Positions 14,891 through 64,000 of a DNA stretch of 64,000 bases are shown here, in pieces. The DNA is taken from positions 186,001-250,000 of the forward strand of contig QPMI01000452.1 in NCBI GenBank assembly GCA_004431415.1, read 5' to 3'. Positions within the stretch are counted from its first letter, which is position 1, and every line of letters starts with the position of its first letter. The notes under the pieces are model-generated. The model was not told where the DNA came from. It saw nothing but the letters and a program-made list of their open reading frames with translations, and made no database searches. Both the position numbers and the translations under genes were made by a program. The stretch is from Cyanophora paradoxa CCMP329. Its lineage: Eukaryota; Plantae; Glaucophyta.

Positions 14891-17800
14891 ATGGTTCGCA
14901 TTCGCGCTCCCTCGCACGCGCGCGATGCCCTTCTCACGCGATCCACGCAGGCGGACGAGCCGCCGAGGGCCAGGCCGCCCGCGGCGCCGCTGTTCCCCGC
15001 GTTCGCGGGCGCGGCTCAGCAGGCGCAGCCACCGGCGCCCGCGGGAGGCCTGTTCGCCGCATATGCAACACCTACCACGTCTACGACTGCGGCCCCGACC
15101 GGTGAGCCCGATCCCGGGCGACCTGTCGCGAAGTAGTTGTGGCCGGCTCTCGCGAGCCATCGCGCCACGATCCCGCCACAAGCACTGCCTGACGCGATCC
15201 CGCGTTCATCGCGCACTCCTGCAGGCGCGGGTTGGCTGCGTGCTTCGAGCTACGTGCCGCCCCCGGAGCAGCCCAGCTCATCGGAGCGGGCCTCCCGCTA
15301 CGTCGTTGAGGATGCGGAGCTGCCGGCACCTGCGCCGCTCTCGGCACTCGCGGTGGTCGGCGGAGGCGGGAAGATTCTGGAGGGGCTGGACGAGGACGAC
15401 CCGGTCGTGCAGCTGGCCAAGATCCGCGCCCGCAAGGCGCTGGCGCTCGAGCGGCAGCAGCCGCAGCGCCGCGCGCCGGAAGAGTACGCGCTGGTCGACA
15501 GCGAGGGGGAGGAGGTGGACGACATGACGGGCCCCGCCGGCGACTCGCTGCCCGTGCTGGCCGAGGACCAGCGCGGCTGGGAGCGGGCCCTCGTGGAGGA
15601 GCGCGTCCGGCGCGACCGGGAGAAGGCGCGGCAGCGGCGGAAGGAGCGCAAGCGCGAGAAGAAGCGGCGCAAGAAGGAGAAGGAGCGGTCGGACACGGGC
15701 TCGGCCGCCGGCACCGACCGCGAGGAGGGCGCCGGCGGGACGGACCGCGAGCAGGGCGCGGCCGGCGACGAGGAGAAGAGGAAGAAGGACAAGGAGAAGA
15801 AGAAAAGGAAGAAGAAGAAGTCGCGCAAGAGCTCCTCGTCCTCCTCCTCCTCGTCCTCCGAGGGCGAGAAGGGCAAGGCCCGCCCCAAGCGCGAGCTGGC
15901 GCTCGCCATGCGCCCCGCGGAGCCCCCGCCCGCCGGTGCGCCCGCTCCGGGCCCGTCCCGGCGCCTCTGCTTGCTCCTCCGCCCTCCTGACAGGCCCCGG
16001 CGCGCAGAGGGCAAGTTCACGCTCGAGGCCAAGCCCGACCCGAACAACCTGGCGTACGAGTCGCTCTACAGACTGGACGTACCCGGCTACAAGGTCCAGC
16101 GGGGGTACCAGCTCTTCCAGAAGAAGGGCGGCCCGGAGGAGCTGGCCGGCGGCGAGGCGGCCGAGCGGCGGCGCGTGTGGAGCCGCCGCCGTGGCGGCTT
16201 CGAAGACGTCATAGAGGTCGAGCGCGGCGGCGGAGGCGGGGGTACGCGCTACTTCGAGCAATCCGTGCAGGACAAGGTGCGGGGCCGCTCCCGTGCGTAC
16301 CCCCAGCAGAGGGCGCCGCTCACATGTCTGGGCAGGCGGAGCGGGGCAAGGACCGCGTTGTGGACATGAGCAGGCAGGCCCTCATCGCCAAGGGCCTGGG
16401 CCCGGCTCTCGCGGGAACAAAGGTGCCGGCGCCCGCGGCTCCTGCCCCTTCCCGCCTCTGATGTGGCGCGCCGAGCAGACGCGCCGGAAGATCCAGGAGT
16501 TCATTCCCCTCGAGGTACGTCTTACCCCCCATCGTTTCCAGTTATGATGATCCGTACCATTTTAAGTTTTTCACAAATTTTCACTCGAAAATTTTGAGTG
16601 CACTGTTTAGATCATTCTTAGCCCATTTTATTCTTCGGGCTGCCTGGATGCTAGCAGCTGGTTGGAAACGGTGGGCAGACTAAATCCGCTATTTACCTGA
16701 TGGGGACCGCGGGCCTTTCCCCGCAGTCCCTAACATTCAGGCGGATACATTATCATTAAATGACTCGATATTTACTATCTTAATGGCTAGGAGCCCATTT
16801 TATTCTTCGGGCTGCCTGGATGCTAGCAGCTGGTTGGAAACGGTGGGCAGACTAAATCCGCTATTTACCTGATGGGGACCGCGGGCCTTTCCCCGCAGTC
16901 CCTAACATTCAGGCGGATACATAATCATCATATGACTCGATATTTACTATCTTAATAGCTAGGAGCCCATTTTATTCTTCGGGCTGCCTGGATGCTAGCA
17001 GCTGGTTGGAAACGGTGGGCAGACTAAATCCGCTATTTACCTGATGGGGGCCGCGGGCCTTTCCCTGCGGTCCTCAACATTCAGGCGGTTACATCATTAT
17101 ATCTCTAATCTGTGAAGTGTTTAGAGCCCATTTTATTCTTCGGGCTGCCTGGATGCTAGCAGCTGGTTGGAAACGGTGGGCAGACTAAATCCGCTATTTA
17201 CCTGATGGGGGTCGCGGGCCTTTCCCTGCGGTCCCCAACATTCAGGCGGATACATCCCTCGCCTTCCTTCCTTCCTTCCTTCCCTCCTTCCTTCCTTTCT
17301 TGCCTGCCGCGGCCTCGCGAACGGGGCTCACGCGCCGCGCGCTCGCTTGCTCGCAGGTGATCGCGGAGCTCGACACGGTCGGCTCGAAGTGGGACAAGAA
17401 GAAGGAGGAGGCCAAGGCCATGCGCGAGAAGGAGCAGGTGCCCGCCCCGCACCCTCCGCGCGCCCGTCCCGTCGATCTCCTTCTGAGCGGCGGTCGAATC
17501 TGGCAGGAGCGGCAGCGGGCGATGGAGGCGAAGAAGGGTGCGGCCGAGCTCCAGGAGGAGGCCGAGCGCCTCGCCGTCTTCGAGGTGCGCCGCCCTCGGC
17601 CCCGCGTTGCGGCATGGGTGGGTGGGGTTTCGAGGGCATAAAATTTCTTTTTGGGCTCCGAGTTGCGCGTTTTGGGTGTTTTTCCGATGGTGATTCTGCC
17701 ATCTTCTTCGCACATTGGATAGTGTTTCGTGTTTTTGCTCTTTCTTGCTTCTGCTTTTTACCGCTTCTCTGCCACGGATGCGGCCCGATAGCTTCGGCGT

Positions 17801-20800
17801 GATGGGGCCCAATCTGTCCAGTGAGTCGCGGAGAGTGACCTTTCGGGGTTTGTCGCTATAGGAATCGGCGGGCGATTCTTGCTTTTGGTTCGCCTCTCGA
17901 GTCGACCAGTGACGACATTTCCGCAAACCATCTATCGTATTTCGATCTTTCTTGCTTCTGCTTTTTACCGCTTCTCTGCCACGGATGCGGCCCGATAGCT
18001 TCGGCGTGATGGGGCCCAATCTGTCCAGTGAGTCGCGGAGAGTGACCTTTCGGGGTTTGTCGCTATAGGAATCGGCGGGCGATTCTTGCTTTTGGTTCGC
18101 CTCTCGAGTCGACCAGTGACGACATTTCCGCAAACCATCTATCGTATTTCGATCTTTCTTGCTTCTGCTTTTTACCGCTTCTCTGCCACGGATGCGGCCC
18201 GATAGCTTCGGCGTGATGGGGCCCAATCTGTCCAGTGAGTCGCGGAGAGTGACCTTTCGGGGTTTGTCGCTATAGGAATCGGCGGGCGATTCTTGCCTTT
18301 GGTTCGCCTCTCGAGTCGACCAGTGACGACATTTTCGCAGAACATTTATCGCATGTTACTCTTTCTTGCTTCTGCTTTTTACCGCTTCTCTGCCACGGAT
18401 GCGGCCCGATAGCTTCGGCGTGATGGGGCCCAATCTGTCCAGTGAGTCGCGGAGAGTGACCTTTCGGGGTTTGTCGCTATAGGAATCGGCGGGCGATTCT
18501 TGCCTTTGGTTCGCCTCTCGAGTCGACCAGTGACGACATTTTCGCAAACCATCTATCGTATTTCGATCTTTCTTGCTTCTGCTTTTTACCGCTTCTCTGC
18601 CACGGATGCGGCCCGATAGCTTCGGCGTGATGGGGCCCAATCTGTCCAGTGAGTCGCGGAGAGTGACCTTTCGGGGTTTGTCGCTATAGGAATCGGCGGG
18701 CGATTCTTGCCTTTGGTTCGCCTCTCGAGTCGACCAGTGACGACATTTTCGCAGAACATTTATCGCATGTTACTCTTTCTTGCTTCTGCTTTTTACCGCT
18801 TCTCTGCCACGGATGCGGCCCGATAGCTTCGGCGTGATGGGGCCCAATCTGTCCAGTGAGTCGCGGAGAGTGACCTTTCGGGGTTTGTCGCTATAGGAAT
18901 CGGCGGGCGATTCTTGCTTTTGGTTCGCCTCTCGAGTCGACCAGTGACGACATTTTTACATTGAATTTAGTAGCGTAATCTTTTGACAGAGAATCCGTTG
19001 GATCTCCTCGTTTATCACCGCTCATTTACCAGTCGTCTTCAGCACCCTCGGGCTGCTATGAGAGATGATTTAATGGCTCGAGCGGATATCTCTCGTCTGT
19101 TTTCGAATTGCCTGCTTCCCACGTAGCGGGTCGTTCAGTTCTTGGACGGAACATACCCACGTGCTCCTAAGCGCCAATAAATTTTACCCTTCATTAGCGC
19201 TCATTTACCAGTCGTCTTCAGCACCCTCGGGCTGCTATGAGAGATGATTTAATGGCTCGAGCGGATATCTCTCGTCTGTTTTCGAATTGCCTGCTTCCCA
19301 CGTAGCGGGTCGTTCAGTTCTTGGACGGAACATACCCACGTGCTCCTAAGCGCCAATAAATTTTACCCTTCATTAGCGCTCATTTACCAGTCGTCTTCAG
19401 CACCCTAGGGCTGCTATGAGAGATGATTTAATGGCTCGAGCGGATATCTCTCGTCTGTTTTCGAATTGCCTGCTTCCCACGTAGCGGGTCGTTCAGTTCT
19501 TGGACGGAACATACCCGCATTCCCTCTAAGCGCTAAGAAGTCTAGGCCGGTCTCTTCTGCTCCCTCTGCGGGCGGCGCCCTGACGGGGGCGCGGCAGGGG
19601 GAGACGACGGAGGACTACCTCATGCGGCGGACGCGCGAGATGAACCGGCACCTCCAGGCGCGCTCGCTCGCTCCCCCCGCCTCCTCCGCCTCCTCCTCGC
19701 GCCCCGCCGCTGACGGCCGCCCGCAGGCGAACCCGCGGGACGAGGATGCCTGGCTGGCCTTTGCCGAGTTCCAGGTGCGAGCGGGCGGGCAGGGCAGTGA
19801 AATGGCAGCCGGCGCGCGCCCGACGCCCGAGGCCGCCGGCAGGACGAGTTCGGGCGGCTGGACGCGGGGGCGCGGGGCCGGCGGCGGGGCCGGGCGGGGG
19901 CGCCCTCGGCGGCGCTCTCGATGGCGGTCGTGGAGAAGAAGATGGCCGTCCTGGAGCGGGCCGTCCAGGTGCCCCTGCAGCCCGTCCGTCTCGGCCGAGC
20001 CGCCTGTTCGGCTGACGCCCGGGCGGCGCGCAGCTGAACCCCGGGAGCGCGAAGCTCGTGCGTGCCTACCTCGCCTTCATGTCCCTCTACGCCGACCCCG
20101 ACAAGGCCCGCCCCGCCCGCCCGCCCGCCCTTCCGCTTCGTCTGACCCGCCGCCCCCCACCCGAGCAGGTCGGGTTCCTCTGGGAGACCGTGCGCCCCGT
20201 CCCCCCTCCCGCGACTCCCTCTACCCCCCCTCCCCTCCCCCGGGGCTCACGTACCCGCCCTCCTCCAGGCGGTGGAGGAGCACCCGGAGAGCGCTCAGAT
20301 GTGGCGCGACTTCATCGAGCACCAGGCGCGCCCTCCCTCCCCTTCCTCCCCCGCGCCTCCGCTCTCTGACGCCCGCCCGCGCCGCAGATGACCGACTTTG
20401 CGAACCTGTCGATCACGAAGCTGCGGGGCCTCCTCGCCCGCGCCGCCCAGGCCCGCCCCGCCTCCCGCCAGGCCCCTCCACCCCCTCGATTCCAGCCTGA
20501 GGCCCCGCTCGGCGAGCAGGCGCTGAGCAAGCACCGGGACGCGCTGCTGGAGGAGGGCCCCGGCAACGCCAAGGCCCGCCCCCCTCCGCTCGCACCGTCG
20601 GAGGCCGCGCGCCCGCCGCTCACTCGGCGCGGCGCAGGCGGCGCGGGAGGCGGAGGCGGGCGCGCTCGAGTTCCTCGCCCGCGCCGTCGCCCTCGAGTGC
20701 CACGCCGGCTACCTCGAGCGCGCCCTCGCCGTCCTCCAGGCACGCCGTACCCCCCCGCCAGCTCTTCCCCTCCACACACAAACTGACGCTCTGCGTGCTC

Positions 20801-23800
20801 CGCAGGCGCTCGTCGAGTTCAACTGCTTCTGCCCCGAGTGGCTCGCCAAGAAGGGCCTCGCGCCCCAGCTCGCCTACTTCGAGGTCCGCGCTCGATTCCG
20901 GCGGGGCCCGTTTCCACCTTCGACTGAAATTCCGGCGCAGGCGTTCTGGGAGTCGGGCGTACCCCGCGTGGGCGAGAAGGGCGCCGAGGGCTGGGACAAG
21001 TGGCTCGAGGCGAACCGCGACCGGCTCGACATGGAGGCCATGGTTCGAATCCCCGCGGTTCCCTTTTCGATTCCGCTGCTCTGACGCGCGGCCGCCCCTT
21101 CAGGTCAAGCGCCTCCAGGAGGCCGTGCAGGAGGCGGCCAAGGTGCGCGGCGCCGGGCTCGCCTCCTCCTTCTCGTTCTGTCGCGCCGACGTTCGTTTAC
21201 GCAGCGCGACGCCGAGATGCCGCCCCCCGCGCCCGAGCCGCCGGCCCTCCCGCCCGGCGCCTTTCCCTTCCCGCCCTTCCCGGGCGCCCCGCCCGGCGCT
21301 CCGGGCGAGCCGGGCGCCCAGCCGTTCCAGTACCCCGGCAACTTCGGGTACGGCATCCTGGGCGGTATGGTGGCCCCGCTGCCGTACGGGTACGGCCCGC
21401 CGCAGCAGCAGCAGCAGTACCCCTCGGCCCCCGCGGGCCTCTACGAGCTCTACGTACCCGGGCAGCAGCACCAGCCACAGCCGCCGCCGCAGCAGCAGCC
21501 CGAGGCGCCCTCGAAGCCGGCCTTCCCCGGCGGCCTACCCCCCATCCCGCCCCAGTTCGCCACCGGCTCCAACTCAGTCGCCGTCGCCCCGCGCCAGCGC
21601 GCCCCCGCCCCGGCCCCCGCCCCAGCTCCCCCTCCCGCCCCTTCCTTCCCCGGGGCGTCAGCATCCGCGTTTCCCGCTGCGGTTGGTTACCCATCCGCAC
21701 CCGCGTACCCCCAGCCGCCAATGGCGTACCCCCAGCCGCCAACGGCGTATCCTCAGCCGCCGACGGCGTACCCGCAGCCGCCCACGGCGTACCCTCAGCC
21801 GCCGACGGCCTATCCCCAGCCGCCAACGGCGTACCCTCAGCCGCCCACGGCGTACCCCCAGCCGCCCACGGCGTATTCCCAGCTGCCGACCGGTTATCCC
21901 CAGCCGCCAACGGCGTACCCCCAGTCAACGGCTTTCCCGCAGCCGCCAACCGCTTACCCCCAGCCGCCAACGGCGTACCCCCAGCCGCCCACGGCGTACC
22001 CCTCCGCCGCTTCCTTCGCGCAGGCGAACATGGGCCCGCCGCACGCCCCCCAACCCTCCTTCCAGGCCGCGGGCGCCCCTTCTTTCGCGGCGGCCAACAA
22101 CGGGCCGCCGCACGCCCCGCCCGCGCCCTTCATTCAGCCCCCGTTCGGGGCCCCGCCCCCTCCTCCTCCTCCTCCGCCGCCGCCGCCCCCGCCTCCCATG
22201 CAGGCGTTCGCCCCGCCGCCGCCTCCTCCGCCGCCGCCCGCGGATTCCGGGGAGGACAGCGGGCCGGAGGTGGGCCCGCCGCGGCCGCCGGCGGCCGCCG
22301 GCGCCGCGATGGACGAGGGCGAGGATGGGGAGCCCGACGTGGGCCCGCCGCGCCCGCCGGCCGGCTCCGGCCTCGACAGCGACGAGGAGCGCGAGCTGAA
22401 CCGCGCCGCAGTCTCCGCCCAGCGGGTCCGCCCGCTCCCTCCGCGAGCGCCGCCCTGCGCTGTTCCTGAGGCGGGGCGGGCGCAGGCGGAGGAGGAGCGG
22501 CGGAACGAGGCGCGGAGGGCGGCCAAGGCGAGGGCGAAGGAGGAGGCGGAGCGGCAGCGGCGCGAGGCGGAGATGGAGGAGCGGCGGGGCGGCCGCAGCG
22601 CGAGCAGCGGATCGAGCGGGGGCGAGGCGAGCGACAGCGACGGGTCGGCGGCGGTGCGGCGGCGGCGGCGCTGGCTCGAGCGCAAGCGCCGCAAGGAGCG
22701 GGACGAGCTGGAGGCGGAGATGGAGGCGCGGGCCGAGGCGAAGCGGCAGCGGCTGCGCGATCAGCGCGAGGCCGAGCGGCGCGAGGCGGCCGAGAAGGCC
22801 GCGCAGGCCGCCGACTCGGACGAGTTCGCCTCGGAGGAGGGTCCGCGCCCCCCGCGCTTCCGCCCCGGCTCCCGCTCCGGCTCCTTCGGCTCCGCCTCGT
22901 CTTAGGCGGGGTGGGCGCAGGGGACGAGCGGCCGTCGGACGAGGAGGAGGAGAGCTTCGAGTCGGATCTGGAGGCCGACCTCGCCTCGGTAGACTCGGAG
23001 GAGGACGAGAAGGAAGAGAAGGAGGGCGAGGAGGGCGAGGGCAAGGAGGGCGGCCCCCGCTGGCGCCTCACCCGCCGCGCCGAGCGCCGCAGGCGCCGCC
23101 GCCTCCGCAAGCAGGCCGAGGTGCGCCCGCCCCGCCGCCCGCCGCGCGCGCCTCGGACAACCGCCGACCAACGCTGACCAGCGTTCGCTCGCTCCTGCGC
23201 GCAGCGGCAGAAGGAGGACAAGAGCGTGTTCGAGGGGTGGCTCGCCCTCGAGGCGGAGCGCGAGCGGGAGTGGGGCTGGCGCCCCGCCCGCAAGCCGGCC
23301 CCCAAGGAGGAGCGGTCCGAGGAGACCAAGGGCGAGGAGGGCGAGGGCGAGGGCGAGGGGGCGCTGGACATGGAGGCGGTGCGAGGGGAGCTGGACCCCG
23401 AGGCCGTCGCCGCCTTCGAGGACGTCGCCCCTTTCCTCGTCCGGTCCGCGCCTTTCGCTTCGCCCCGCTTCGCCCCGCTTCGTTTCGTTTCGTTTCGTTT
23501 CGTTTCGAACCCGCCTTTACTCGGTGGCGCTGCGGAGGCGGCTCCGGCCGTCCTCGCTCGCGCGTCGCCTGTATAAGGTGGGGAGAGTGACCCGGGCACA
23601 TATTGCCGTGATAGCAGCCGCCTAGCCTGCTTCCGTGGCAGTCGTCTGTCCAGACATCCGCCTGTTTCGCCTTCCGCCCTCTCCGCTCCGCACCCGTTTC
23701 ACTGCTCTGCGTCCGGAAGCACAAACCCGCCCCCTTCGTCTCACGCCGAGCGCGGCAGGTTCACGCAGTTGGACCTGCGGGAGGAGCTCATTGCGCGCCT

Positions 23801-26800
23801 GCTCTCCTTCCTCGGCGTCGTGGGCTCGGGTCCGGCCGCCGCGCCCGTGGGCCCCCGCCGCTGCAGCAACGACCCCGAGTGCATCGATATCGCCGTGCGC
23901 CCGCCCCCGCCCGTCCTTCCTGCCGTCGAGCACGGAGAGCTCAGGCCGCACCGCAGGGCGCCCTGTTCCGCGAGGGCCTCGAGACCGAAGAGCCGCCGCG
24001 GGCCGCGCCCCAGCTCGAGGCCGGCAAGGCCGGTGCCGGCGGCGAGGGCGGGGCCGACGCCGGGGCGGCGGACAACAAGGCGGGCGAGGAGGAGGCCGAG
24101 GACCCCTTCGGCTTCAAGATCGGGGCCGAGGCGGAGCGCAGGGAGCGGGAGCAGAAGGAGCGGGAGGAGCGCGAGGTGCGCTCCCCGTCCCGTGTCCCCG
24201 CTCCCCTTTTCTCGGCCCGCTTTCGCCATTTCTGCGTCGTTCTCGCCCCCATTTTGTTGGGCGGCGCTGCGGAGGCGGCTCCGGCCGTCCTCAATCGCGC
24301 GTCGCCTGTATAAGGTGGGGAGATTGACCCGGGCATATATTGCCGTGATAGCAGCATCCTAGCCTGCTTCCGTGGCAGTCGTCTGTCCAAACATCCGCTG
24401 TCTTTAGTCATTGCTGGGACATCAGTCCTCGTTCTTTTTTTGCTAGCGGGCCCAAGTTGCGTCCTGCCCCTCGATGAGTGGGGGCCGGTCTTCTTGGGTA
24501 TGGGCCCAGAGTGTTCGGCCACGCTTTACCGCTGCGCGCTGCTACGGTGCGCGTCGCGGCACTAGTTGGTCACACACACAATCTTCTTGCCGTTTCGGCC
24601 TAGCTCCCTCTCCTGGCTCGCCGCTTCTGGGGCGAGCCGCGCGGGGCCGGGCCGAGAGTGGAAGGCTGCTAATTACCTCCGCGCGGTTGTGCCGTTCTGG
24701 CCGCTCCATGCGCGCGGCGGCAGTCGCGGACCACACATCTTTCTTTTCCATCCCCTCCTCTCTCCTTTCCGCGCGCGCGCCTCGCGGCGACCCGCGCCCG
24801 GGGCTGACCGCCGCGCCGGCAGCGACGGGAGGAGGCGCAGGGGGCCGAGGTCCCGGCTTCCCGCCTCCACACCCCCGCCCTCCTCTGGCCCCTCTACGAC
24901 CCCCTCTCCCTCGCGCCCGTACCCCCCCAGTCCCTCTTCGGGTCCGCCAACCCCTGGTCCCCCGCCGTCCTCCTCGCCGGAGAGGAGAACGCCCCCAAGG
25001 CGAGCGAGCGTACCCCCGCGTCCCCCCGCGTGCCCCCCCTGACCTCTCCGGCAGGCCGCGGAGAGCCGCGCGGGGCGGTGGGAGTCGGCGGCGCTCGCCC
25101 TCGAGTCGGCGATCCGCACGCACCCAGCCAACCCCGCCTTCCTCTCCGCGTGCGCCGTAACCCCCCCCCCCCCCCCCCGGCGCCCGTACCCCCGGCCCGT
25201 GACGCCCGCGCCTCGCGCAGGTACCTGGAGCACGTCATGGCGCGCCCGCCGGGGGCCGAGCTGCCGCCGGGGGCAAAGGAGGCGGCGGCAGCCGGGGCGG
25301 ACCCGAAGAAGGCGGCGGGGGCGGGCCCGCCGGGGGTCGAGGAGGCGAGGGCCGTCGCCAAGGGACTCCTCAAGCGCCACCGCGCCGAGATCCTCCTCTA
25401 CCACGGTACCCTCCTTCCCCCCTCTCTGTACCCCCCGGCCCCTTCGTCGCTGACTTGGGCGGCGCGCCTCTCGGCAGTGTACGCGCGGCTGGAGGCGCTG
25501 ATCGGGAGCGCGGGGGAGGCGAAGCGGGTGTACGAGGCGGCGCTGGGGCTCTGCGCGCAGCTGCCCCCGGCGCAGCGCAAGCACGCCCCGCTCCTCGCCC
25601 GCGCCCTCGTCGAGCTCGAGCTCGGCGCCTCCGCCCCGGCCCCGGCCCCGGCCCCGGCCCCGGCCGCCCCGCGCTCCTCCTCCAAGAGCCTCTCGGCGGG
25701 CCAGCGCAACGCGGCGCTGCACGCGCTCGCGGCGGCGCCCTTCGCGGCGGACGGGGAGAAGTACGCGCCGCTCCCCGCGGGGGCGCGCCAGGGCCAGCGC
25801 AACCCGGCGGCGCCCGGCGGCGAGTGGGTCCCTGCCACGCGCCTCCTGCGCGCCCGCATCGCCTACGACCAGCGCGTCTCGGACCTCCTCGCGGCCCGCA
25901 AGAAGGAGGCGGCCGCGAGGGCCCCGCGGACGTACTGGGGCGAGGCTGGAGAGCTCGCGGCCGGGGGCGGGGCGCTGGCGAGCCTCGCGGCGTGCTACGG
26001 GTACATGCTCTTCCTCACCGAGGGCCTCGACGCCGCCTGCGCCTTCTACGAGGCGACCCTCGCCGCCCTCGCCCCGCCCCCCGTGCGCCCCTCTGCTCGC
26101 CCCCGCCCTTCCTCCTCGTCCGCCGCGCTGAGGCGGCACGGGCGCAGGCGGAGGAGGCGCGGGCCGGGTCGCTGGCGCCGCCGGCGCGGGAGCTGCCGCG
26201 GGGGCCGGCCGGCCTCGAGCTGGAGTCCCTCCACGTCTGGTACCCCGCGCCCCGCCCCTCCCTCCCTCGCCGGCCTCGGCCGGGCCTGACCCGCCCGGCA
26301 GCTACGCAAAGCTGCTGGTGTGGGCGGCGGAGGCGGCGCCGCCGGTGGCCCCCGCCCGCTTGCGCCGCGCCCTTGAGGCCGCCCTCGCCCTCTTCCCCTC
26401 GTCCGCCCCGCCCCGCCCCGCCCCGCCCCGGCCCCGTCTCCGCCCGCCTCCCCCTTTCTCACCCCGCACTCGCGCCCCCGCAGGAACGCCCTCTTCCTCT
26501 CGCTGTGAGCGCCCTCCCCGCCCCCCCCTCCCTCCCCCCCTCGCTGACCCCGCCCCGCCCCGCCCCGCGCGCGCGCAGCTACTGCGAGACGGAGGCGCGC
26601 TCGCAGCTCTCGGGCCGCGTCCGGCTCCACTTCGACGTCGCCTGCTCCCGGTGCCCGCCCGCCCCCGCCCGCCCGCTTAGCATAAGATCTCAACAGAGCT
26701 TCGTTGCTGGGACGTGCTGCTAAGAAATGGTTTAGGATATCATAGCTCTCTAACATACATCCCGCTCACCTTGGCCCAGGCCCGACGCGACGGCGGCGGA

Positions 26801-28035
26801 GTGGGAGGCGGCCATCCGCGCCGAGCTCGCCGGCGTCGCCTCGGGGGCCCGCCCGGGGGCCGCCCACCGCGCCCGCGCCCTCTTCGACCGCGCCCTCTCC
26901 CTCCCGGGTGCGCCCCGCCCCCCAGCCCGGCCCCGCCCTCCCTCCCGCCCTCGAGCTAGGCGCAGGATCCGCTCGAGCGTGCCCCTCTGGCGCCTCTACG
27001 TCCGCTTCGAGGTCTCCCAGGCCGCCGCCGCCTCGGCCGCCGCCGCCGCCGCCGCCGCGGGGAAGGGGGCGGCGCCGGGCCGGGACCCGGGGGCGGCCGC
27101 TGCCGCCGCCGCGAACACCGCCGTCCGGGCCTACTACCGCGCCATCCGGGTTCGTTCGCCGCCCCGCCCGTTTCCTTCTCGTTTCGCTGGTTACTTGTTC
27201 GCGAATCTTTTTGGAGTCCCTTCCTAGCTTTCTTAAGTCGCTGTTGGGATTTCTTGTTCTTTCTAGTCTAAATAGCGGGCCAAGTTGCGTCTTGTTCTTT
27301 CTAGTCCAGGTAGCGGGCCCAAGTTGCGTCCTGCCCCTCGATGAGTGGGGGCCGGTCTTCTTGGGTATGGGCCCAGAGTGTTCGGCCACGCTTTACCGCT
27401 GCGCGCTGCTACGGTGCGCGTCGCGGCACTAGTTGGTCACACACACAATCTTCTTGCCGTTTCGGCCTAGCTCCCTCTCCTGGCTCGCCGCTTGTGGGGC
27501 GAGCCGCGCGGGGCCGGGCCGAGAGTGGAAGGCTGCTAATTACCTCCGCGCGGTTGTGCCGTTCTGGCCGCTCCATGCGCGCGGCGGCAGTCGCGGACCA
27601 CACATCTTTCTTTTCCATCCCCCCTTTCTCTTCCTATTCTTATTATTCCCGAACGCACGCGCCGGCCTGACCCACGGCGAGGGCAGGCGGCGGGGTGGAG
27701 CAAGCGGGTGTGGACGGACGTGATCCGCTCGGGCCCGCTGCGCCGCCGCGTGCGCGCCGACGAGCTGCAGGTCCGCTGCCGGCCCCTCTCCAGCCCAGCC
27801 AGCCCCCCTGAGCCCCTTGCGGCAGGGGCTGGTGGAGCTGATGCACGACAAGCACCTGCGGGTGCGGGCCGAGCTCGACGAGGTCCTCGACCTCCGCGCC
27901 CTCGCCGCCCTCCGCCCCGGCCCCGGCCCCGGCCCCGGCCCCGGCCCCGGCCCCGGCCCCGGCCCCGGCCCCGGCCCCGCGGCTGGGGAAGCGGTGGCCC
28001 CGGCGCCCGCCCCGGCGCCCGCCCAGCAGGGGTAG
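14891..28035 (+). CDS. NRDE2: NRDE2/Nrl1 (nuclear RNAi and MTR4-exosome regulator, HAT repeats), many exons; snoRNA host gene
   Basis: LFPAFAG and WLRASSY at the N-terminus; KPDPNNLAYESLYRLDVPGYK; TREMNRHLQ|ANPRDEDAWLAFAEFQ; EKKMAVLERA; AGYLERALAVLQ|ALVEFNCFCP; FWESGVPRVGEKGAEGW; PLWRLYVRFE; LMHDKHLRVR near the C-terminus. Confidence 0.9.
16621..17257 (+). ncRNA. 4 tandem intronic box H/ACA snoRNAs (~132 nt each, snR8-like); starts 16621, 16793, 16965, 17126
   Basis: Hairpin GCCCAT..GTGGGC, H box AGACTA, hairpin ATCCGC..GCGGAT, then ACA+3 nt. Differences between copies largely keep the stems, often via G-U pairs. The 5' pocket (TTATTCT/GGAAAC) fits LSU GUUUCCC-U-C-AGGAUAG. Confidence 0.8.
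17761..18955 (+). ncRNA. 6 tandem intronic box H/ACA snoRNAs (~160 nt, 207-bp period), snR34/U65 (SNORA65)-like
   Basis: 5' hairpin pocket CTGCCAC/CCAGT pairs with LSU ACUGGC-U-U-GUGGCAG. 3' hairpin pocket ATAGGAA/GTCGAC pairs with LSU GUCGGC-U-C-UUCCUAU and sits 14 nt from ACA. Starts 17761, 17968, 18175, 18382, 18589, 18796. Confidence 0.88.
19018..19514 (+). ncRNA. 3 tandem intronic H/ACA-like snoRNAs (~138 nt, 179-bp period)
   Basis: Hairpin CGCTC..GAGCG, degenerate H box ATATCT, hairpin TCGTCT..GGACGG, ACA. The 3' pocket TTTTC/AGTTCTT fits LSU AAGAACU-U-U-GAAAA at 14 nt from ACA. Confidence 0.72.
21706..21996 (+). repeat. coding 21-bp tandem repeat, 14 units of YPQPPTA within NRDE2
   Basis: Units differ mainly at synonymous third positions (TAC/TAT, CCC/CCT/CCG/CCA). 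Confidence 0.85.
23510..23659 (+). ncRNA. intronic H/ACA snoRNA species 4, copy 1
   Basis: Hairpin CCCGCCTT..AAGGTGGGG, H-like box AGAGTGA, hairpin GGGCA..TGTCC with pocket CATAT/GTCGTC, then ACAtcc. A paralogue lies in another intron. Confidence 0.7.
24246..24396 (+). ncRNA. intronic H/ACA snoRNA species 4, copy 2
   Basis: Near-identical to 23510-23659; H-like box AGATTGA; ACA at 24391. Confidence 0.7.
24448..24740 (+). ncRNA. intronic 293-nt unit: two consecutive H/ACA-like RNAs or one double-H/ACA RNA, copy 1
   Basis: GGGCCCA..TGGGCCC-AGAGTG-GGCCA..TGGTC-ACA, followed by CGGCCT..GGGCCG-AGAGTG-hairpin-ACAtct. Duplicated at 27315-27607. Confidence 0.6.
27315..27607 (+). ncRNA. intronic 293-nt H/ACA-like unit, copy 2
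   Basis: Almost identical to 24448-24740; similarity ends shortly after the last ACA. Confidence 0.6.
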
Positions 28036-45613: not shown

Positions 45614-47170
45614 TTCTGTATATATTTTGTGCTAGTTTACTGTATCTTTGATTTGTGATTGCTTTGTTGTCTTTAATATCACTACCTACGGGGGGTTCGC
45701 CCCACCGTAGTCTCTCAAAAAAAAAAAAATTCCGGTTTTGGGCGAATTCGGCAATTTCACTCCACGGCAATTTGAGCCGTCCTACAGTATGATATACGCG
45801 CGCGGCGCGCGCGCGAGAGATCTCAGTATATATACACAGTATGATACGCGCGCGCGCGATCATCGGATCGCGATCGCGAGCTCGATCGAGTCGCCGGCGC
45901 CGCGACTCGGGGTCCACTGTCCAGGGAGTCGGGGAGTCCAGAATCACTCCGATCACGAGTCCAATGCCGCGGCGTCGCCAAGTCGACCGTCGGACGTCGA
46001 CGTGGGCGCAGTACTGTATACGCAGTACTATGACTCAGTGATAGTATGCGTACCGCGCCGCGCGCCATCGCCGAGAGTCGTACGTATACACGAGATCGCC
46101 GCGGTGCGATCGGTGAAGCTCGAAATGCATATACATCGATCGAGCGACTTGTTGACTCTGTGAGCGGCGCATGCTATACCAGTATACGTATGCGTACGCT
46201 ATACGGTAGCTAGCTATAGCTGAGGTATAGCTAAGCATAATTCAAACCGCAGCAATAGTCGGTCGCGAGCTGTGAGTCTTACTCAGTGACTTGCGACTTC
46301 GAATACCGCATGCGCAGTGCCGGTATAGCTACCGGTATAGCTTGCCTGCAACTTTGGCAAGTTAGGCTAACTTGGCAACTGTCGTTGAGTCGGAGATCGA
46401 GAGGCGATCAGCAACATCGATATTAATTCGGAGTCCCTAGTAGATCTAGACTCTCTACAGCCCCCGATCGCGTGAGCCCACGTACAAGATCGCATACACG
46501 CGTAAGGTATACGTATACGTATACGGTGCGTTGGATTCGAAGTTCATGATTCCCGAAGCTTAAGGCGCGTGCGCGTGCACATATATATATACATGTGGAT
46601 GTACATGCATATGCATACATGCATATGCATATGCATATGTACATGTCGACGTCGATGTGGATGTACATGATATCGATAAGCTTAATTATAATCCGTAGCA
46701 GCTGCAGCTGCAGCCTGCAGGCCGTTAAATTATAACAGTACTAGTGTGATCGCGAGCCCGCGATCGCGATCGAGAACTTGCACGATATGTAGAGAGTGTT
46801 CGTGTACGGTACATGCTCCATGTTTAACTAACATCGATATGTAGGCCACGAAATGGCCAGCTCGAGTTCAAAACCTGGGACACCGAGGCTGGTCCACATT
46901 CAGTCGCATCAGCTCCACCAGCCGATCGCGATCCCAGTCGATCTCAACTCGGCCTCCAGATCTTTGATTTCAGATCCGTCGTCTGTGCATATGGCCCCAG
47001 TCAACGTTGCAGAGGACTCCCGGCCGCTGGAATTTGAAGCGGCTGCAGGCCCAGGTCCGAATTCTCTGCAGGCGTATCGATTGTGATCCAGATTGAAGTT
47101 CCAATAATGTTGCGCAGCAGAACCAGATCCAGCCCCGATCGCGATCTATGAACAGAAACGTGCGCAAGCG

Positions 47171-47243
47171 ACACATATGAATATTCATATTTTAATCCCT
47201 CGGCGTTCCGCCTCAGGATTAAAATATGAATATTCATATGTGT
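47171..47243. repeat. perfect 28-bp inverted repeat with nested 16-bp palindromes at the host/virus boundary
   Basis: ACACATATGAATATTCATATTTTAATCC (47171-47198) / GGATTAAAATATGAATATTCATATGTGT (47216-47243). Confidence 0.9.
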
Positions 47244-47246
47244 GAT

Positions 47247-47960
47247 TCGATGTTATATCAATAAAATCGATTAATTTATTTGAATTTTCACATGAATTTT
47301 CATATTTTTATATGCATTTTCAATTAATTTAATCGATGTTATATCGATAAACTCGATTAATCGATATTGTATCTTAATTGTAGTTAATCGGAATTATATG
47401 AATAACTTCGATTGATCTTAATTGAAATCCTAAATGAATCTAATCGGAATTATATCAATAAATTCGATTAAATCATGTTCTTTTCCGATTAAATTATTTA
47501 AATATTTAACTTTGTTACCATAAGTGGTCTAAGTTGACTCACTTTTCATAAACATTTTGAACTCTTAGTCTCCTTGAATTTCTTAAGATGACTCAACTTA
47601 GTCAACTTAGTCAACTTTGTTACCATAATCAATCAGGGTGGACTCACTTTTAGATCAACTTTGAAATTTCAAGCAAAATCAACTTATATTTCAAAAGTGG
47701 ATCTTCTAAGTGGACTCAATATGTTCACTTTGTGATACATGTTAGCTCAAATCCTTACTGTTTATGGTCAGGGTTGACTAAGTGGGGGGAGTTGACACAT
47801 TTTTTGAAATCCTTTTTAGAAAAGTTTAGGTCCCAAATATTTCCTGTGAAATTTGAGTCAACTCAACCCACTTAGTCAACCCTCCCATTGAATTCGTAAC
47901 AAAATCCATATACTTTTACTACTTTTACGATTAATATGAGTCAACCTTGAGTCCACTTAA
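47247..47960. repeat. AT-rich non-coding terminal region with direct repeats and GT(T/G)GACT(C/A)A motifs in both orientations
   Basis: Four related TCG..TTATAT(C/G)(A/G)ATAA..TCGATT units at 47247-47470; about 10 GTTGACT/GTGGACT motifs; ~32-bp inverted repeat 47771-47802 vs 47850-47882. Confidence 0.7.
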
Positions 47961-48234
47961 ATATAAATATAATATAATAGGGGGAATCTAGGGGAGATGC
48001 TGAGTTTTATTGTAAGGAAATCGAATAGTATTCGAAATACTTTACATTGCTTAATGTAGGGTGCATTCATATTTCGGCTACATCATACAGTAGAATTCTA
48101 TTGTAACAAAAGCTACTGTAGAAAGAAAATCATTGTAGAAAGCTATTGTAGGAAAGGATATATTATATCCTTTTTTAACGATTGCCATTGTAATAAAAAA
48201 GGTAAATCACCCTGATCATCATTATAGAAACCCA

Positions 48235-48633
48235 TCAAAACGGGAATCTATCATGTTTATGTCTCTCAGTCTTCTCAAATGTAAGGAAATTCATTGTTTT
48301 ATCGATCTCATCTGCAACTGCTTGTGTTTTATGCTGAGCTTCTTTACCACAACTGAATATATCAATTGCTAACATGCCTTCATTGGAATAACAATGAGCT
48401 GTACAATGGCTTTCATCTAATAGCAGAACCAATGCAAAACCAGGAGGTGATAGTTTTCCATCAAATATCTCACAATGTTTATGAACAATCCTAATGCCTT
48501 GTCTTAATACTGCTTGTTCTAGGGTTCTCATAATCCAATTTCCAAGAAAGCTCACATGCTCATAACCTGTTGCAATAGCTGTTTTAGCCTTGTAATCAAG
48601 CATAACATGGAAGCCCCTGTATTGAGTCTCCAT
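48235..48633 (-). CDS. speD: prokaryotic-type pyruvoyl-dependent S-adenosylmethionine decarboxylase proenzyme (SpeD/SpeH family)
   Basis: GFHVMLD, PPGFALVLLLDESHCTAHCY, AIDIFSCG; E-S-H self-cleavage motif; 132 aa. Confidence 0.88.
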   Translation of the reverse strand: METQYRGFHVMLDYKAKTAIATGYEHVSFLGNWIMRTLEQAVLRQGIRIVHKHCEIFDGKLSPPGFALVLLLDESHCTAHCYSNEGMLAIDIFSCGKEAQHKTQAVADEIDKTMNFLTFEKTERHKHDRFPF

Positions 48634-48662
48634 TAAGAATACCTTAGAAAAATTAATTAAAC

Positions 48663-48935
48663 CTAATCGAACCTAATGCAAACATCCCTATATTCCACTG
48701 TGATTGATGAAGTAGTCCTTTTTCTATAAGCCTGAGAATGCTTCTTGTTGCATTCTCTGCAACCTGATCCCTTCACATGATTAAAGGGATAGGTAAGGAT
48801 CACCTTGTTACACTGCAAACATCTAACAGATACTTTCTCTTGAGCTTTGATGTAATGTGTCTCACTGTAATCGAATTTATCTTTACCATGAACTGTCATA
48901 GCAGCATCAATAAACTTTTTTGTTTTACTATCCAT
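48663..48935 (-). CDS. single Zn-ribbon module (VHG.KFDYS...CxxC...H...GCxxC), related to the 61880 nuclease
   Basis: Same repeat unit as the N-terminal part of ORF 61880-62812, without a nuclease domain. Confidence 0.7.
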   Translation of the reverse strand: MDSKTKKFIDAAMTVHGKDKFDYSETHYIKAQEKVSVRCLQCNKVILTYPFNHVKGSGCRECNKKHSQAYRKRTTSSITVEYRDVCIRFD

Positions 48936-48957
48936 ACTCTATATATAACCAATATTC

Positions 48958-49791
48958 TTATGGAGCAGTATCCTGTCCGAAAATGGGGAAATATCTATTT
49001 GTCCCATAGTACTCAGCATAGGTATTCTGCTTTGCAATAAAATCGGTTCTCTCAGCATATAATACACACTTGTATATACCAAACTTGGTGGCTCTTACCA
49101 GAAACTGATAGTCTTCCAAACCAAAATTGACTCCATGATAAGCAATCCCGAAATTATCATATGGGGTGATCACAACTGCAAAATTAGGAGTTCCACCCTC
49201 CACTTGACATACAGCATATACATCTGGTGGAATATCCACAACAACCTTGTAGTGGTCCCCAATCTCAACAAGAGAATCTACTACTGCTGTTTGTTCATTT
49301 ACAACAATTGGGAATATTTTGATTATATAGGGCGCATTCATGCTGGGGACATAGGTTCGAATTCTGGTGTTGGGATCAATGGGATTGGGTTGATCATTCA
49401 CAAATAAAGGCGCTCCAACAGCCCCACCAACCCGAAGACCATCACCAATATAAGCTCCCCCCGATTTGCAGTTAATAGCTCCCGACCTAGATTCAAAAGA
49501 ATAAGTAGACAGAGGATCTCCATAGCTATCTGGGTCTCCATAATGAGCAGAAAAGTTTGCATTGGTAACAAGTAGCTTAGTTGTCTTAACTATTCCATTA
49601 TTTTTATCACATCTGAGTTCCTGTAATCTCAGCTTGTGGGTGGAACCAAAGGTGTTCATTGTAGGTTGGACCTCTGTGGATTGGAGACCCTCTACATCAT
49701 CAAAGGTAGCATGCTGTAGAACATGGTTTGCTGGGGCAGCTAATGATAGCTGTGGTGTAATAATTCGTTCAAGTGGGGGTTGCTCAGCCAT
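48958..49791 (-). CDS. putative virion fibre/spike protein, paralogue A
   Basis: Shares ELR.DKN.G.VKTT.LLVTNANF and SGGA.IG.G.RV.G with the adjacent ORF. The structural role is inferred from context. Confidence 0.5.
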   Translation of the reverse strand: MAEQPPLERIITPQLSLAAPANHVLQHATFDDVEGLQSTEVQPTMNTFGSTHKLRLQELRCDKNNGIVKTTKLLVTNANFSAHYGDPDSYGDPLSTYSFESRSGAINCKSGGAYIGDGLRVGGAVGAPLFVNDQPNPIDPNTRIRTYVPSMNAPYIIKIFPIVVNEQTAVVDSLVEIGDHYKVVVDIPPDVYAVCQVEGGTPNFAVVITPYDNFGIAYHGVNFGLEDYQFLVRATKFGIYKCVLYAERTDFIAKQNTYAEYYGTNRYFPIFGQDTAP

Positions 49792-49814
49792 TTTACATTA
49801 AAGGGATATATCTT

Positions 49815-50669
49815 TTATGGGGTTGGGTCATCAATTACATCTAATTCTTGGTAAAATCCTGTTGTGAATATATCAGCAACATTTACCCCACGGAGTGCTG
49901 AAACAGCTGCTATATCTGTTCTCAGTCCCATAATCATAGTATTGTAAACTCCAACCTCAGTGACATACAAATCATAAGTAAATGTCAGATTGTTATAAAC
50001 ACAATATCCCCGACCAAAATGGTTGGATGCTTGAACAAAGAATAGGTAATTGTGACCTTGTTGGTTATTATTTGCTCTACACATTGAGAGCATTGCTGTG
50101 GGAAGAGGAATATTCCTTCTCACTCGATCAGTTCCTGTAATAGAAACCAATTCTGAATTTTCAAGAGTGACAGATGATGCAACATAGAAATGCAGAAAAG
50201 GTTGCTGTGCAACTGGTGTATAGAACCGAATTCTTTGTGGGTTCTCAGCATTTTGTTCAAGAGTATCTGGGACATCATTGTAGGAAACAGAGGATGAAAG
50301 CTGACCTGAAACTCTGCAACCACCACCAATAAAAGCTCCTCCTGATCTCACAGTTACAGCAGCAGAATTCTTATCGAAATCCAGGGCTTTCAGATCAACA
50401 CTGTAAGCATCAGGACCTCCATTGGTAGGTTGGAAGAAGTTTGCATTAGTCACAAGAAGTCGAGTTGTTTTCACCACACCAGAATTCTTATCAGCTCTCA
50501 GCTCTTTAACTCGAATAATCGAATTTTTATCAAAGGAGTTACCATTGGAATTGGGTCTCTCTGTGGATTCTAAACCACGAACCTCATCATTTACTTCATG
50601 CTGGCGAAAATGCATTGCAGGGGATCCAAGGGAATATATAGGCAGTTGAACTCGATTATATTCACCCAT
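49815..50669 (-). CDS. putative virion fibre/spike protein, paralogue B
   Basis: Paralogue of 48958-49791; probable ATG at 50669 (MGEYNR), downstream of a TAGTAAAAG motif. Confidence 0.5.
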   Translation of the reverse strand: MGEYNRVQLPIYSLGSPAMHFRQHEVNDEVRGLESTERPNSNGNSFDKNSIIRVKELRADKNSGVVKTTRLLVTNANFFQPTNGGPDAYSVDLKALDFDKNSAAVTVRSGGAFIGGGCRVSGQLSSSVSYNDVPDTLEQNAENPQRIRFYTPVAQQPFLHFYVASSVTLENSELVSITGTDRVRRNIPLPTAMLSMCRANNNQQGHNYLFFVQASNHFGRGYCVYNNLTFTYDLYVTEVGVYNTMIMGLRTDIAAVSALRGVNVADIFTTGFYQELDVIDDPTP

Positions 50670-50707
50670 TGCTTCTTTTACTAAGAAGGAAAGAAAAATA
50701 AACTCCA

Positions 50708-51013
50708 TCAAGCCAAAGAGATTAAATTCGATCCAAGGGATTGGTAAACAGTTGAAAGAACTTGTAGGTTGGATGTCATTGCTTTAATGTTGTTATCACA
50801 CTCATTGTATTTGGCAACAGGGTCACCATATGCAGCTTGAGCAAGGACATTAACCAATAGAGACTTATACTCATTAACAACTGGTGAGAGCTTGTTGGTT
50901 TGCTGAATCGTTTTTTCAACTGTTTGCAGTGCGTTTACAAGCTTGATTGTATCAAAAGCAAGAGCAACAGGCTCAGTAGAATAGGAGGTTCCACCAAGTG
51001 GATAGGTCGCCAT
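50708..51013 (-). CDS. viral hypothetical protein (101 aa)
   Basis: ATG-initiated ORF packed tightly between viral genes. Confidence 0.6.
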   Translation of the reverse strand: MATYPLGGTSYSTEPVALAFDTIKLVNALQTVEKTIQQTNKLSPVVNEYKSLLVNVLAQAAYGDPVAKYNECDNNIKAMTSNLQVLSTVYQSLGSNLISLA

Positions 51014-51016
51014 TTA

Positions 51017-54000
51017 TTATACTGTGACATTTTTAATTTGGTCTATTTGATATTGTAGACTCTTGCATTTCTGAGACAACTCCTTCACAGCCTCTATGAG
51101 AACTGGAACCAATCCTGTGTATTCAAGAGATAGATAACCATCATCTGGTTTCACATTCACAATCTCTGGTATAACCTTTTGGACATCTTGTGCAATTAAA
51201 CCTAATTTCGCTCCATCTTTCTCATTTCCAATTCGTTTAAAACTCACTCCTTCTAATTTCTCAATTGCTGAAAGAGCGCCTGTTATCTTTTTGATATCAG
51301 TTTTGTATCTTATATCACTTGCTTGTGTTAGATAACCTCCTATCCACATCCAACCCCCATGATACATGTAACAAATATCAGTATCTTGTTCATTTCGGAA
51401 TACAAGGGGAATATCTCCCCTTCCTTTCAAATATGTAGAACCATTGTTACCGAAATGAATTCGATTATATCCATCACTGGAATTAAACCAACTTCCCACA
51501 GTGCCTGTTAAAAGATTTGGTTTACTATAAACATTATTCCAATGAATATAACCGGTGTGACCTCCATAACTATGTCCAACCCAAATTTTCATGTAACTTA
51601 TACCCATAATATGAACTCTTCCAATCTTTGGTCTAATCCGAATAGTCAAAAATCGATTACCGAGATGTATAGGAACATTATTTAAACCGCTGTGGTTACT
51701 GTCAGGAGATGTGGCGTATGGTTGATAACTATTCACTGATGTAATAAAAACTTCATTTCCTTGTCGATTTACTCCCCAAATTTCAAAAAGTCGTGAGTTT
51801 GTCCAAGGTAGATAAGTTAAAAACGCTGTTCCTGTGTGATATCCTTCTGGAATATCGAAGTCAATCCAAGCGGTAGAAGTTTGGTCATCATATTGCTTAT
51901 TATAAACGTAAGAACCATAATTATAATATGGATCCCATGATGAACTCCATGCCCACTCCCAATCGTTATAAGAACATCTATTAAATTCAATACCTCCTAC
52001 TGCTTTATCTACTGTGTGAAACTTTGGGACATCATTACCGTTTATTTGGAGTTTGGTGGTTGCATTAATAGTAGGTGCTGTAATAGTATTATTCACCCAA
52101 AAGTTACCATTGTTATAAGATTTTAAAATGGCTGTATCTGCTGAGTTTCTGAATTCAATTGACACACCATCACCATTTGGTCTCCCTCGTATATATGTGC
52201 AATCGCCATTACCAAACCAAATTCGTTCTACTGCATCTGTTGATTTTAACCATGTATTTGTTGCCCATGTTGCCGTTCCTGGGAGGTCTGCGGCTGAATA
52301 AAATGACGGTTTACTAAAAATATTATCCCAACTGAGAAAACCAACCTCATTATCAGTTGCTCTTTGTCTACTCCAACCAAAAACCCCTGTGAGATGAATG
52401 CGACCTTTTCGACCTTGAATATAAATATATTTGTAAAACTCACAATTAATTGAGACAAACAAGATAGTATTATTTGTTCCATCATGATTAACTGACTGTA
52501 TTCCTTGATAATCATTTACTCGTTTTAAGAAATGTTGATATCCATTAGTTGTTTGCCCATAGATATCGAAATATCTGCCATTATACCAAGGCATATGCTG
52601 AATATAAAATGATTTCATGCCTGTGGGGACAGTCCACCTCATAAAGCAACCACTACAGTCCTCATCATTTTGTGGTGTTGTATAACATCCTGTTTGTCCT
52701 GTTCTTGGTGACCAATTCAAAGTCCAATTATTTGCGCTGCGATCTGTCGAAACACTATCTAATTGATCAAATTCGAAACCTTTCGGTATTGTGGTTCCAC
52801 CAATTTGTAGAGTGGTAGCATTCACAGTTCCATTGACAGTTCCACCTGAAAGAGGTAAATAATTTGCAAGAGCTGTTGTTAACTCTGCATCTGTTGTATA
52901 GCTGCTTAAATCTGCTGTAGTAAGATACCCTTTATTGGTAAGGTAATCATCTGTGACCACACCTGAAAGGGTGGTATTGTGTAAGTTCTTTGCTGCCATC
53001 CTCTGATTGACTTCTAAGGCTCCACCTGATGTCGTTTTAATCCATGCAATCTCACATTTCCCATGATCATCTGTGGGTTGTCCTGCAACTGGAAGGTAGT
53101 TTACAACTTTCTCCTTGTAAACACAATTTTAGGTCTTGCTCCATCATATGGGTCTTGATCTGTTACATTAACTTGAATTGCTGCTGAAAAATTGGCTACT
53201 TGTCCTGTTTCTCCTGGGTGATAATTCGTTACATAGATACTGGGGAAAGTATCATTAACTCCCACATTAAAATCGCCATCATAATCTCCATTAACAATTG
53301 GATCCCTGGGTAATCTTACTGCAAGAGTTCCCTCCATTGGAGTGCCTGTTTGACCTGTAAAAGACCCATTGAGACTTACATAATGATCATTCAAAAATAG
53401 TCTTTCAGGTGTATTACTCGATTGGTAAAGTGTGACTCCATTAAAAACGTTTCCAATTGCATTCAATTGTGCGAAAACTGGCTGGTCATCAATTTCTTCC
53501 CATGGGTGCCTGTGGTTGCTATTTGTAATCTCTGAATAATCATGAGTGTGTGAATCTGGTGGAAAGGTTAATGGTGGATTCGTGATATGCTCCCATAAAT
53601 GTGTATGGGCGAAATCTGTTATTTGATCTTTTGTGTGAGTATGGGCAAAATCTGTTATTTGATCTTTTGTGTGAGTATGTGCGAAATCTGTGATTTGATC
53701 TTTTGTGTGAGTATGTGCGAAATCTGTAATATCCGCTTTTGTGTGTTTTTGGTTTGCTAACCAATCTAAGACAACATTAGAAGTAGGATGATGTGGAAGA
53801 TTTGCATTTTCGGTAACTGTGAGATTTTCAATAAATACATTGCTCGAATTAATTTTAAGATCTTCATTATTCAATACGGGCTGCGTATTCGGAAATCCAT
53901 ACAATAATTGTATATAATATCTAACCGCGTTCTTTTCTTCAATAGATAACGCACGATTGAAAACGATAATTTCGGCAAGATCTCCATTAGCAACAGAAGA

Positions 54001-56831: not shown

Positions 56832-56874
56832 GGCTTTTACTATATGGATTTATAAAATTCCTGATAAGTAAAAG

Positions 56875-59348: not shown

Positions 59349-59377
59349 TTTAATATATAAATATAGATAAAAGAAGA

Positions 59378-60386: not shown

Positions 60387-60439
60387 ATTAAGGATCATTG
60401 GTAGATTTTTTATGTTGCAGTATAATAAAAGAGAATATA

Positions 60440-61809: not shown

Positions 61810-61879
61810 ATTGTTACGATATATCGTAAGGCATTTAAGGAAAAAGTGATTATTTATTTTTGAAAACATTTAAAAGTCA

Positions 61880-62812: not shown

Positions 62813-62865
62813 ACCATTTTCAGTCTCCCTGCATTATTTTTATCTGTCTCTTTATAGAGAGAACC

Positions 62866-63648: not shown

Positions 63649-63676
63649 AATTATCTCTCATTCTAATAAAGATACA

Positions 63677-64000
63677 ATGCCTCCAAACGAAAGATAGGGA
63701 TCCCAGCTGGGGCTGTTGCTATTCAGGTGGTGGAAACAATGGATCCATCAACACAGACCCACTGAAGTTCAATGGTATGAATGAGGTGAAGCCCTCACAA
63801 CAACAAGAAGACCCCCTCAATGCTGCCTATGAAGAATCATTCGATGACAAAGCCCCACAGGCTTCAACCAGTGACCAACTCAATATCTCACCAGAAGCTT
63901 CGAAAATGAAGGCTGTTGCAGAGGGTGCCAGGCGAATTATTGGTGCTGCTGATGATAAAGGTTTAGGCTTACAAGATCTTTCACTTACCCGCAAAGGTGA
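63677..64000 (+). CDS. partial viral ORF (truncated by the window, likely frameshifted)
   Basis: ATG at 63677 after TAATAAAG; an open frame runs to the window edge. Confidence 0.4.

Follow-up and report, generated by a model that had tools for sequence, protein, structure and literature searches.

Introns of an NRDE2 homologue in the glaucophyte Cyanophora paradoxa CCMP329 carry six families of repeats that are very probably ordinary box H/ACA guide small nucleolar RNAs (snoRNAs), amplified by local duplication within a broadly expressed RNA-processing gene. The gene lies in the 64,000-nt stretch analysed here, hereafter the window (contig QPMI01000452.1, positions 186,001 to 250,000; all coordinates below are window positions). 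Families A to F comprise 19 units of 132-164 nt on the sense strand: four copies of A, six of B, three of C and two each of D, E and F. A first-pass annotation of the sequence had proposed about 19 intronic units of six snoRNA species, all sense and confined to NRDE2 introns. All 19 were confirmed, and no copy was found on the minus strand or outside the array introns within the window. Its families and counts were correct; a weaker candidate, G, had been missed. The gene, its long introns and their units are listed below (LSU and SSU, large and small subunit ribosomal RNA [rRNA]; Psi, pseudouridine).

15227-28035, + strand: NRDE2 homologue; 36 or more coding exons forming a single open frame of about 2,136 amino acids; true start upstream of 15227.
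16515-17356, + strand: intron with four A units; 842 nt; gene model.
16621-16752, + strand: unit A1; H box at 16677 (AGACUA) and ACA box at 16747; predicted to guide LSU Psi960 and Psi986 in yeast numbering.
16793-16924, + strand: unit A2; same as A1 except in the tail.
16965-17096, + strand: unit A3; 7 differences, mostly in the upper stem of hairpin 2 and none in predicted pockets or boxes.
17126-17257, + strand: unit A4; from sequence comparison of the A copies.
17585-19597, + strand: intron with six B and three C units; 2,013 nt; gene model.
17757-18955, + strand: six B units of 164 nt, period 207, starting at 17757, 17964, 18171, 18378, 18585 and 18792; hinge AGAGUGA.
19019-19514, + strand: three C units of 138 nt, period 179, starting at 19019, 19198 and 19377.
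23444-23758, + strand: intron with D1; spliced out in RNA-type contigs.
23510-23659, + strand: unit D1, inside that intron.
24176-24822, + strand: intron with D2, E1 and F1; spliced out in RNA-type contigs.
24247-24396, + strand: unit D2; 14 differences from D1.
24445-24581, + strand: unit E1; predicted guide for SSU Psi466 and Psi1290.
24594-24740, + strand: unit F1; 3' pocket fits an LSU site.
26651-26779, + strand: intron with candidate G; 129 nt; spliced out in RNA-type contigs.
26675-26762, + strand: candidate G, a possible 20th unit that nearly fills its intron; AU-rich long hairpin, hinge, short hairpin and ACA plus 3 nt; single copy.
27150-27686, + strand: intron with E2 and F2; gene model.
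27312-27448, + strand: unit E2; identical to E1.
27461-27607, + strand: unit F2; one difference from F1.

The units share one anatomy. A to F, six unrelated sequences, each fold as hairpin, hinge, hairpin and ACA, and in G the second hairpin is short. The ACA follows hairpin 2 in 19 of 19 units; conservation ends about 3 nt later in A and D, and the 3' end of E is ambiguous, falling within an AC run. Hinges read AGACUA in A, AGAGUGA in B and D1, AGAUUGA in D2, AGAGUGU in E, AGAGUGG in F and AUAUCU in C. The hinges of B and D fall within the known range, ANANNGA being an established minor variant of the H box that makes up 10% of one training set (PMC1636440); those of C, E and F are relaxed. 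Whole-unit folding clearly exceeded that of shuffled sequences in A (z -4.6), D (-3.3) and C (-2.2). The z values of B, E and F, between -0.9 and -1.4 (B, -0.9), were not clearly above shuffles, and that of G (+0.6) was not above chance. The hinge core AGAGUG is common to four unrelated families (17832, 23584, 24508 and 24655) and is perhaps a lineage-preferred H box.

Conservation was largely centred on the units, as the first-pass annotation had claimed for the structured part. Pairwise difference among B copies was 0.4% in the unit versus 12.6% in the spacer; D differed by 9% versus 60-70% in its flanks, and the E-F block by 0.3% versus 63-70%. The claim did not extend to C, which showed no contrast between unit and spacer. 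Among the A copies five stem pairs were altered on one side yet still paired, mostly by G-U exchange, and two pairs were broken; no change fell in predicted pockets or boxes. Between D1 and D2 no predicted pairs were broken.

Targets were sought on proxy rRNAs: 120 metagenomic eukaryotic ribosomal DNA (rDNA) loci fetched using the C site, one of them a confirmed 18S-5.8S-28S locus. An unconstrained scan was noisy, with antisense controls often scoring as high as sense sequences, and pockets were therefore fixed from the folds. The pockets paired with conserved rRNA uridines, in keeping with the earlier proposal that the units are H/ACA guides. The best matches at conserved sites reached p ≤ 0.02 against 100 shuffles in 9 of 14 pockets (summed z 10.8; optimistic values), and the target uridine lay 14-15 nt from the H or ACA box, inside the 13-16 nt range for H/ACA guides. 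Both pockets fitted targets in A, B, C and E, the 3' pocket only in F, and the fit of D was weak. The 5' pocket of A fits GUUUCCC[U]CAGGAUAG and its 3' pocket GUU[U]UAUCAGGUAAA (target uridine in single brackets); the B pockets fit ACUGGC[U]UGUGGCAG and GUCGGC[U]CUUCCUAU. The 5' pocket of C fits GGCCAUU[U]UUGGUAAG, predicted to be LSU Psi1124, and its 3' pocket fits GAACU[U]UGAA(A/G)A, with two candidate LSU sites. The E pockets fit 18S UACCCAA[U]CC (SSU Psi466, p 0.02-0.08) and UUAGU[U]GGUGGAGYG (Psi1290, p 0.01-0.03). The 3' pocket of F fits LSU CGACUG[U]UUAAUUA, two bases 3' of yeast Psi2133, which we take to be the human SNORA19 site; for both D and F, the human counterparts are presumed ones. 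Candidate G has a doubtful target close to the GUGCAGAUCUUGG motif of the LSU, a match that requires three bases to stay unpaired.

Yeast site numbers were assigned to these contexts from what we take to be their counterparts, together with the spacing between targets. In 24 of 24 rDNA loci, 54 nt separated the two B targets, equal to the spacing of yeast Psi2826 and Psi2880. The A pair was separated by 26-28 nt, the A 3' target from the C 5' target by 134-137 nt, and the E pair by about 820-840 nt. The corresponding yeast sites are tabulated as 2826/2880 (snR34), 960/986 (snR8), 1124, 466 (snR189) and 1290 (snR83) (PMC8307265). Judged by pairing and spacing, A is a predicted guide for LSU Psi960/986, B for LSU Psi2826/2880, C for Psi1124 and E for SSU 466/1290. 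The spacing of paired sites, in the right hairpin order for A and B, is a stronger argument than the shuffle p-values.

Four of the families resemble known guides. B is like yeast snR34, human U65 (SNORA65) and plant snoR2 (Rfam clan CL00042) in both predicted pockets (LSU 2826 and 2880, 54 nt apart) and in its long hinge. It differs from them in its six tandem copies per intron, its ANANNGA hinge and a sequence match below the Rfam gathering score: the top match, snoR2/U65 (E 3.5), scored 13 bits versus 44, with the 3' pocket matching. A predicts the same LSU pair as yeast snR8 (Psi960, Psi986) in the same order, although Rfam found no sequence similarity to snR8 and the second site is 986 or 987, depending on register; its top match, Caenorhabditis elegans ceN42 (RF01632; E 0.04, below threshold), has the same 5' pocket. 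C shares its 5' pocket and target, LSU Psi1124, with Schizosaccharomyces pombe and yeast snR5 (RF01435, clan CL00038). S. pombe snR5 was the best snoRNA match over the C region (E 1.1, below threshold), with an identical 5' pocket (UUUACCA / AAUGGCU), whereas the 3' pocket of C differs from the second snR5 pocket and fits another LSU sequence. The E pockets fit the sites of both yeast snR189 (18S Psi466) and snR83 (18S Psi1290): one RNA would hold both sites, whereas yeast uses two separate ones.

Several results weigh against guide snoRNAs. No unit matched Rfam at the gathering threshold, so that the Rfam scan suggested by the first-pass annotation yielded only sub-threshold H/ACA matches for A, B and C; an E-value search on D2-E1-F1 returned nothing relevant, and there was none for D, E or F. 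The strict ANANNA hinge occurs only in A, and B and D have ANANNGA. The layout hairpin-H-hairpin-ACA plus 3 nt, ascribed earlier to every unit, stood for the two hairpins and the ACA of A to F, with a strict H box only in A, and folding was weak in B, E and F. The target matches were made on proxies, themselves retrieved with a predicted target, and the pocket registers were picked by hand after the matches had been seen, which makes the p-values optimistic. The 3' pocket of D fits an LSU 3'-end site, AGACGACU[U], weakly (p about 0.1), and the 5' hairpins of D and F had no target among the conserved uridines of the proxy rRNAs. Two-sided compensatory changes were not seen among the A copies or the D copies. 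The RNA-type runs consist of assembled contigs, in which no mature units show.

Identification of the host gene as NRDE2, as first annotated, is supported by Pfam and PDB searches run exon by exon rather than on the joined protein. In the coordinate-based gene model a single open frame runs across at least 36 exons, with a GC content at third codon positions of 0.86-1.0 in each. Exon 20941-21042 matched Pfam NRDE-2 (PF08424) at 35.6 bits versus a cut-off of 34 (E 7e-9). Exons 20638-20739 and 23205-23441 gave weaker matches collinear with it, and the three cover profile positions 150-179, 207-233 and 250-299. The top PDB match for exon 16010-16291 was 6IEH_A, the MTR4-binding fragment of human NRDE2, a weak match (E 0.029) limited to the first 28 residues of the MTR4-interacting domain. 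Homologue searches using single exons returned nothing. Between Pfam NRDE-2 positions 233 and 250 the protein also carries about 600 inserted residues of low complexity (21104-23120): a proline-rich part with about 14 heptad copies of the AYPQPPT type (21703-22010), followed by a Glu/Arg-rich part.

The gene model has 35 introns with a median length of 68 nt, and only 6 of the 35 exceed 100 nt. Five of these carry A to F units and the sixth holds the weaker candidate G; none of the 29 short introns has snoRNA units. Eleven modelled junctions within 23118-26965 were found among the splice joints listed for RNA-type contigs from three runs. Three of the six long introns (23444-23758, 24176-24822 and 26651-26779) were removed with GT..AG ends. 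GC-AG ends occur in 8 of the 35 introns (19658-25054), mostly where the preceding exon ends in AG. The NRDE2 region has a GC content of 70-75%, with AU-richer islands; the C. paradoxa genome is 99.94 Mb with 67.6% GC and a mean intron of 86 bp (PMC6704402).

Within the long introns, spacers between units are 12-63 nt and mostly AU-rich, and the last unit ends 79-99 nt from the 3' splice site in five introns and 17 nt from it in the case of G. Family A spans 16621-17257 with periods of 172, 172 and 161. The two mixed polycistrons reported earlier, with 6+3 and 1+2 units, kept their counts, and their coordinates were corrected to 17585-19597 and 24176-24822. The E-F tandem pair is present twice, at 24445-24740 and 27312-27607. 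Just upstream of E2, at 27252-27330, 38 nt from the 5' end of unit E have been partially duplicated in tandem, a trace of how copies arose by duplication.

In the mechanism that we propose, splicing of NRDE2 pre-mRNA would release the long introns, which would be cleaved within their AU-rich spacers and then trimmed back to the units that H/ACA core proteins shield. Intronic snoRNAs mature through splicing and debranching, after which exonucleases trim them to ends protected by protein (PMC4696412); several units per intron would additionally need a cut between them. Each hairpin pocket of the mature RNAs would base-pair on both sides of a conserved uridine in rRNA, lying 14-15 nt from the H or ACA box, and this uridine would be converted to pseudouridine. 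Copies may have been gained by tandem duplication and unequal crossing-over inside introns, with single units or pairs copied to other NRDE2 introns. A single transcript would thereby yield several guides, and the dosage obtained from a host of modest expression may rise.

The assembly and copy-specific variants are the basis for the numbers of A, B and C copies; for E-F and D, DNA contig depth adds to it. In the DNA run the E-F contig had a depth of 115 versus 37-59 in neighbouring contigs, as expected for two copies; D1 and D2 each lay on a single-depth contig of their own. Since its depth is about twice that of the flanks, E-F is not a dispersed repeat; genome-wide dispersal, named by the first-pass annotation as a refuting outcome, is disfavoured for D as well. 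It is unlikely that the snoRNAs are real and the A, B and C copy numbers are assembly artefacts, or that most copies never leave the polycistronic intron. The 99-100% identity of the B and of the C copies and the reliance on assembly favour an artefact, and the spacers, in which no shared structure marking an endonuclease site was seen, favour unreleased copies. The A copies, however, differ by up to 7 bases and have different spacers, and unit and spacer variants of B are interleaved across copies, a pattern that is hard to get by mis-assembly and argues for real copies; the genome is also a PacBio assembly (PMC6704402). Near-identity within arrays together with the mixed B variants suggests that units duplicated in tandem and exchanged unequally in the recent past, and D, like the E-F pair, was copied from one NRDE2 intron to another. 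It is extremely improbable that the repeats are satellites or non-autonomous mobile elements that resemble H/ACA RNAs by chance. Near-identical tandem copies, weak folding z values in B, E and F and the absence of an above-threshold Rfam match would suit such elements, but all units are sense and intron-confined, six unrelated sequences have one box layout, the paired targets agree with known yeast guide pairs at exact spacing, and by DNA depth D and E-F are present once or twice. Unit ends showed neither terminal inverted repeats nor target-site duplications.

A regulatory role for the arrangement was also weighed. The first-pass annotation had suggested that dosage-amplified arrays inside an exosome-regulator gene form a feedback link, and no supporting evidence was found. 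In its full form, real snoRNAs would have had their location in NRDE2 selected as feedback, with snoRNP (small nucleolar ribonucleoprotein) assembly or exosome trimming setting NRDE2 mRNA output and NRDE2 restraining MTR4 and the exosome or aiding splicing of these long introns. We consider this very unlikely. Autoregulation of NOP56 through SNORD86 is an analogue. In the homologue the beginning of the MTR4-interacting domain seems to be conserved, and human NRDE2 binds MTR4 and inhibits its recruitment (PMC6499326), which bears out the earlier statement that NRDE2 binds and regulates MTR4. Human NRDE2 is also reported to promote splicing of weak 5' splice sites (PMC10351895). The snoRNA load is high, with six or seven species over six introns, and low-depth intron-retaining contigs cover 24146-24473 and 27167-27715. 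Retained introns with roughly one tenth of the depth of exons are, however, expected from pre-mRNA or DNA, and no sequence feature linking the units to NRDE2 splicing or regulation was seen. Host choice tracks expression breadth, snoRNAs drifting among broadly expressed hosts (PMC3511168), and human NRDE2 is found mainly in nuclear speckles and acts on mRNA, rRNA processing belonging to other MTR4 complexes (PMC6499326). Two partial animal-like NRDE2 loci on metagenome contigs (L121 and L122) have satellites and lack snoRNA-like units, a weak negative. In these loci a conserved FW.SG.PR.GE.GA.GW motif is tandemly repeated two or three times (L121 502-793, L122 6978-7172). An extended version would make NRDE2 a sensor tying H/ACA snoRNP supply to nuclear RNA decay through coupled snoRNA release and mRNA output, with an endonucleolytic step also needed for the nine-unit intron and a lineage that may favour the AGAGUG hinge; we regard it as highly doubtful.

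Ordinary guide snoRNAs thus being the favoured reading, NRDE2 is a new snoRNA host gene in an intronic arrangement that is already known. As the first-pass annotation had supposed, a limited literature search turned up no description of NRDE2 hosting snoRNAs, and likewise no literature on Cyanophora snoRNAs. Work by Huang and colleagues from 2004 reportedly describes intronic H/ACA clusters in Drosophila, and work by Chen and colleagues from 2008 is said to concern intronic snoRNA clusters. Chlamydomonas and plants have intronic polycistronic snoRNA clusters with duplicated isoforms (PMC7671301). NRDE2 resembles the Chlamydomonas, plant and Drosophila clusters in that a protein-coding gene hosts multiple intronic snoRNAs, many of them duplicated isoforms, and differs from them in the identity of that host and in having 19-20 units, all H/ACA, in one gene. 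The arrays by themselves reveal no new mechanism. They would provide a first H/ACA guide set with assignable targets for a glaucophyte, a lineage for which no snoRNA descriptions were found, and would extend snR34/U65-, snR8- and snR5-type guides to that branch. With nine units in one intron and copy-specific variants, they also offer a compact case for polycistronic intron cutting and the homogenisation of snoRNA arrays.

Two box C/D readings were rejected, each for want of a matching D box: one of candidate G, and one of the C-box-like ATGATGA near 16544 at the start of the A intron, which is probably a chance occurrence. Elsewhere in the window, GC content falls sharply to 37-42% across 46000-64000.

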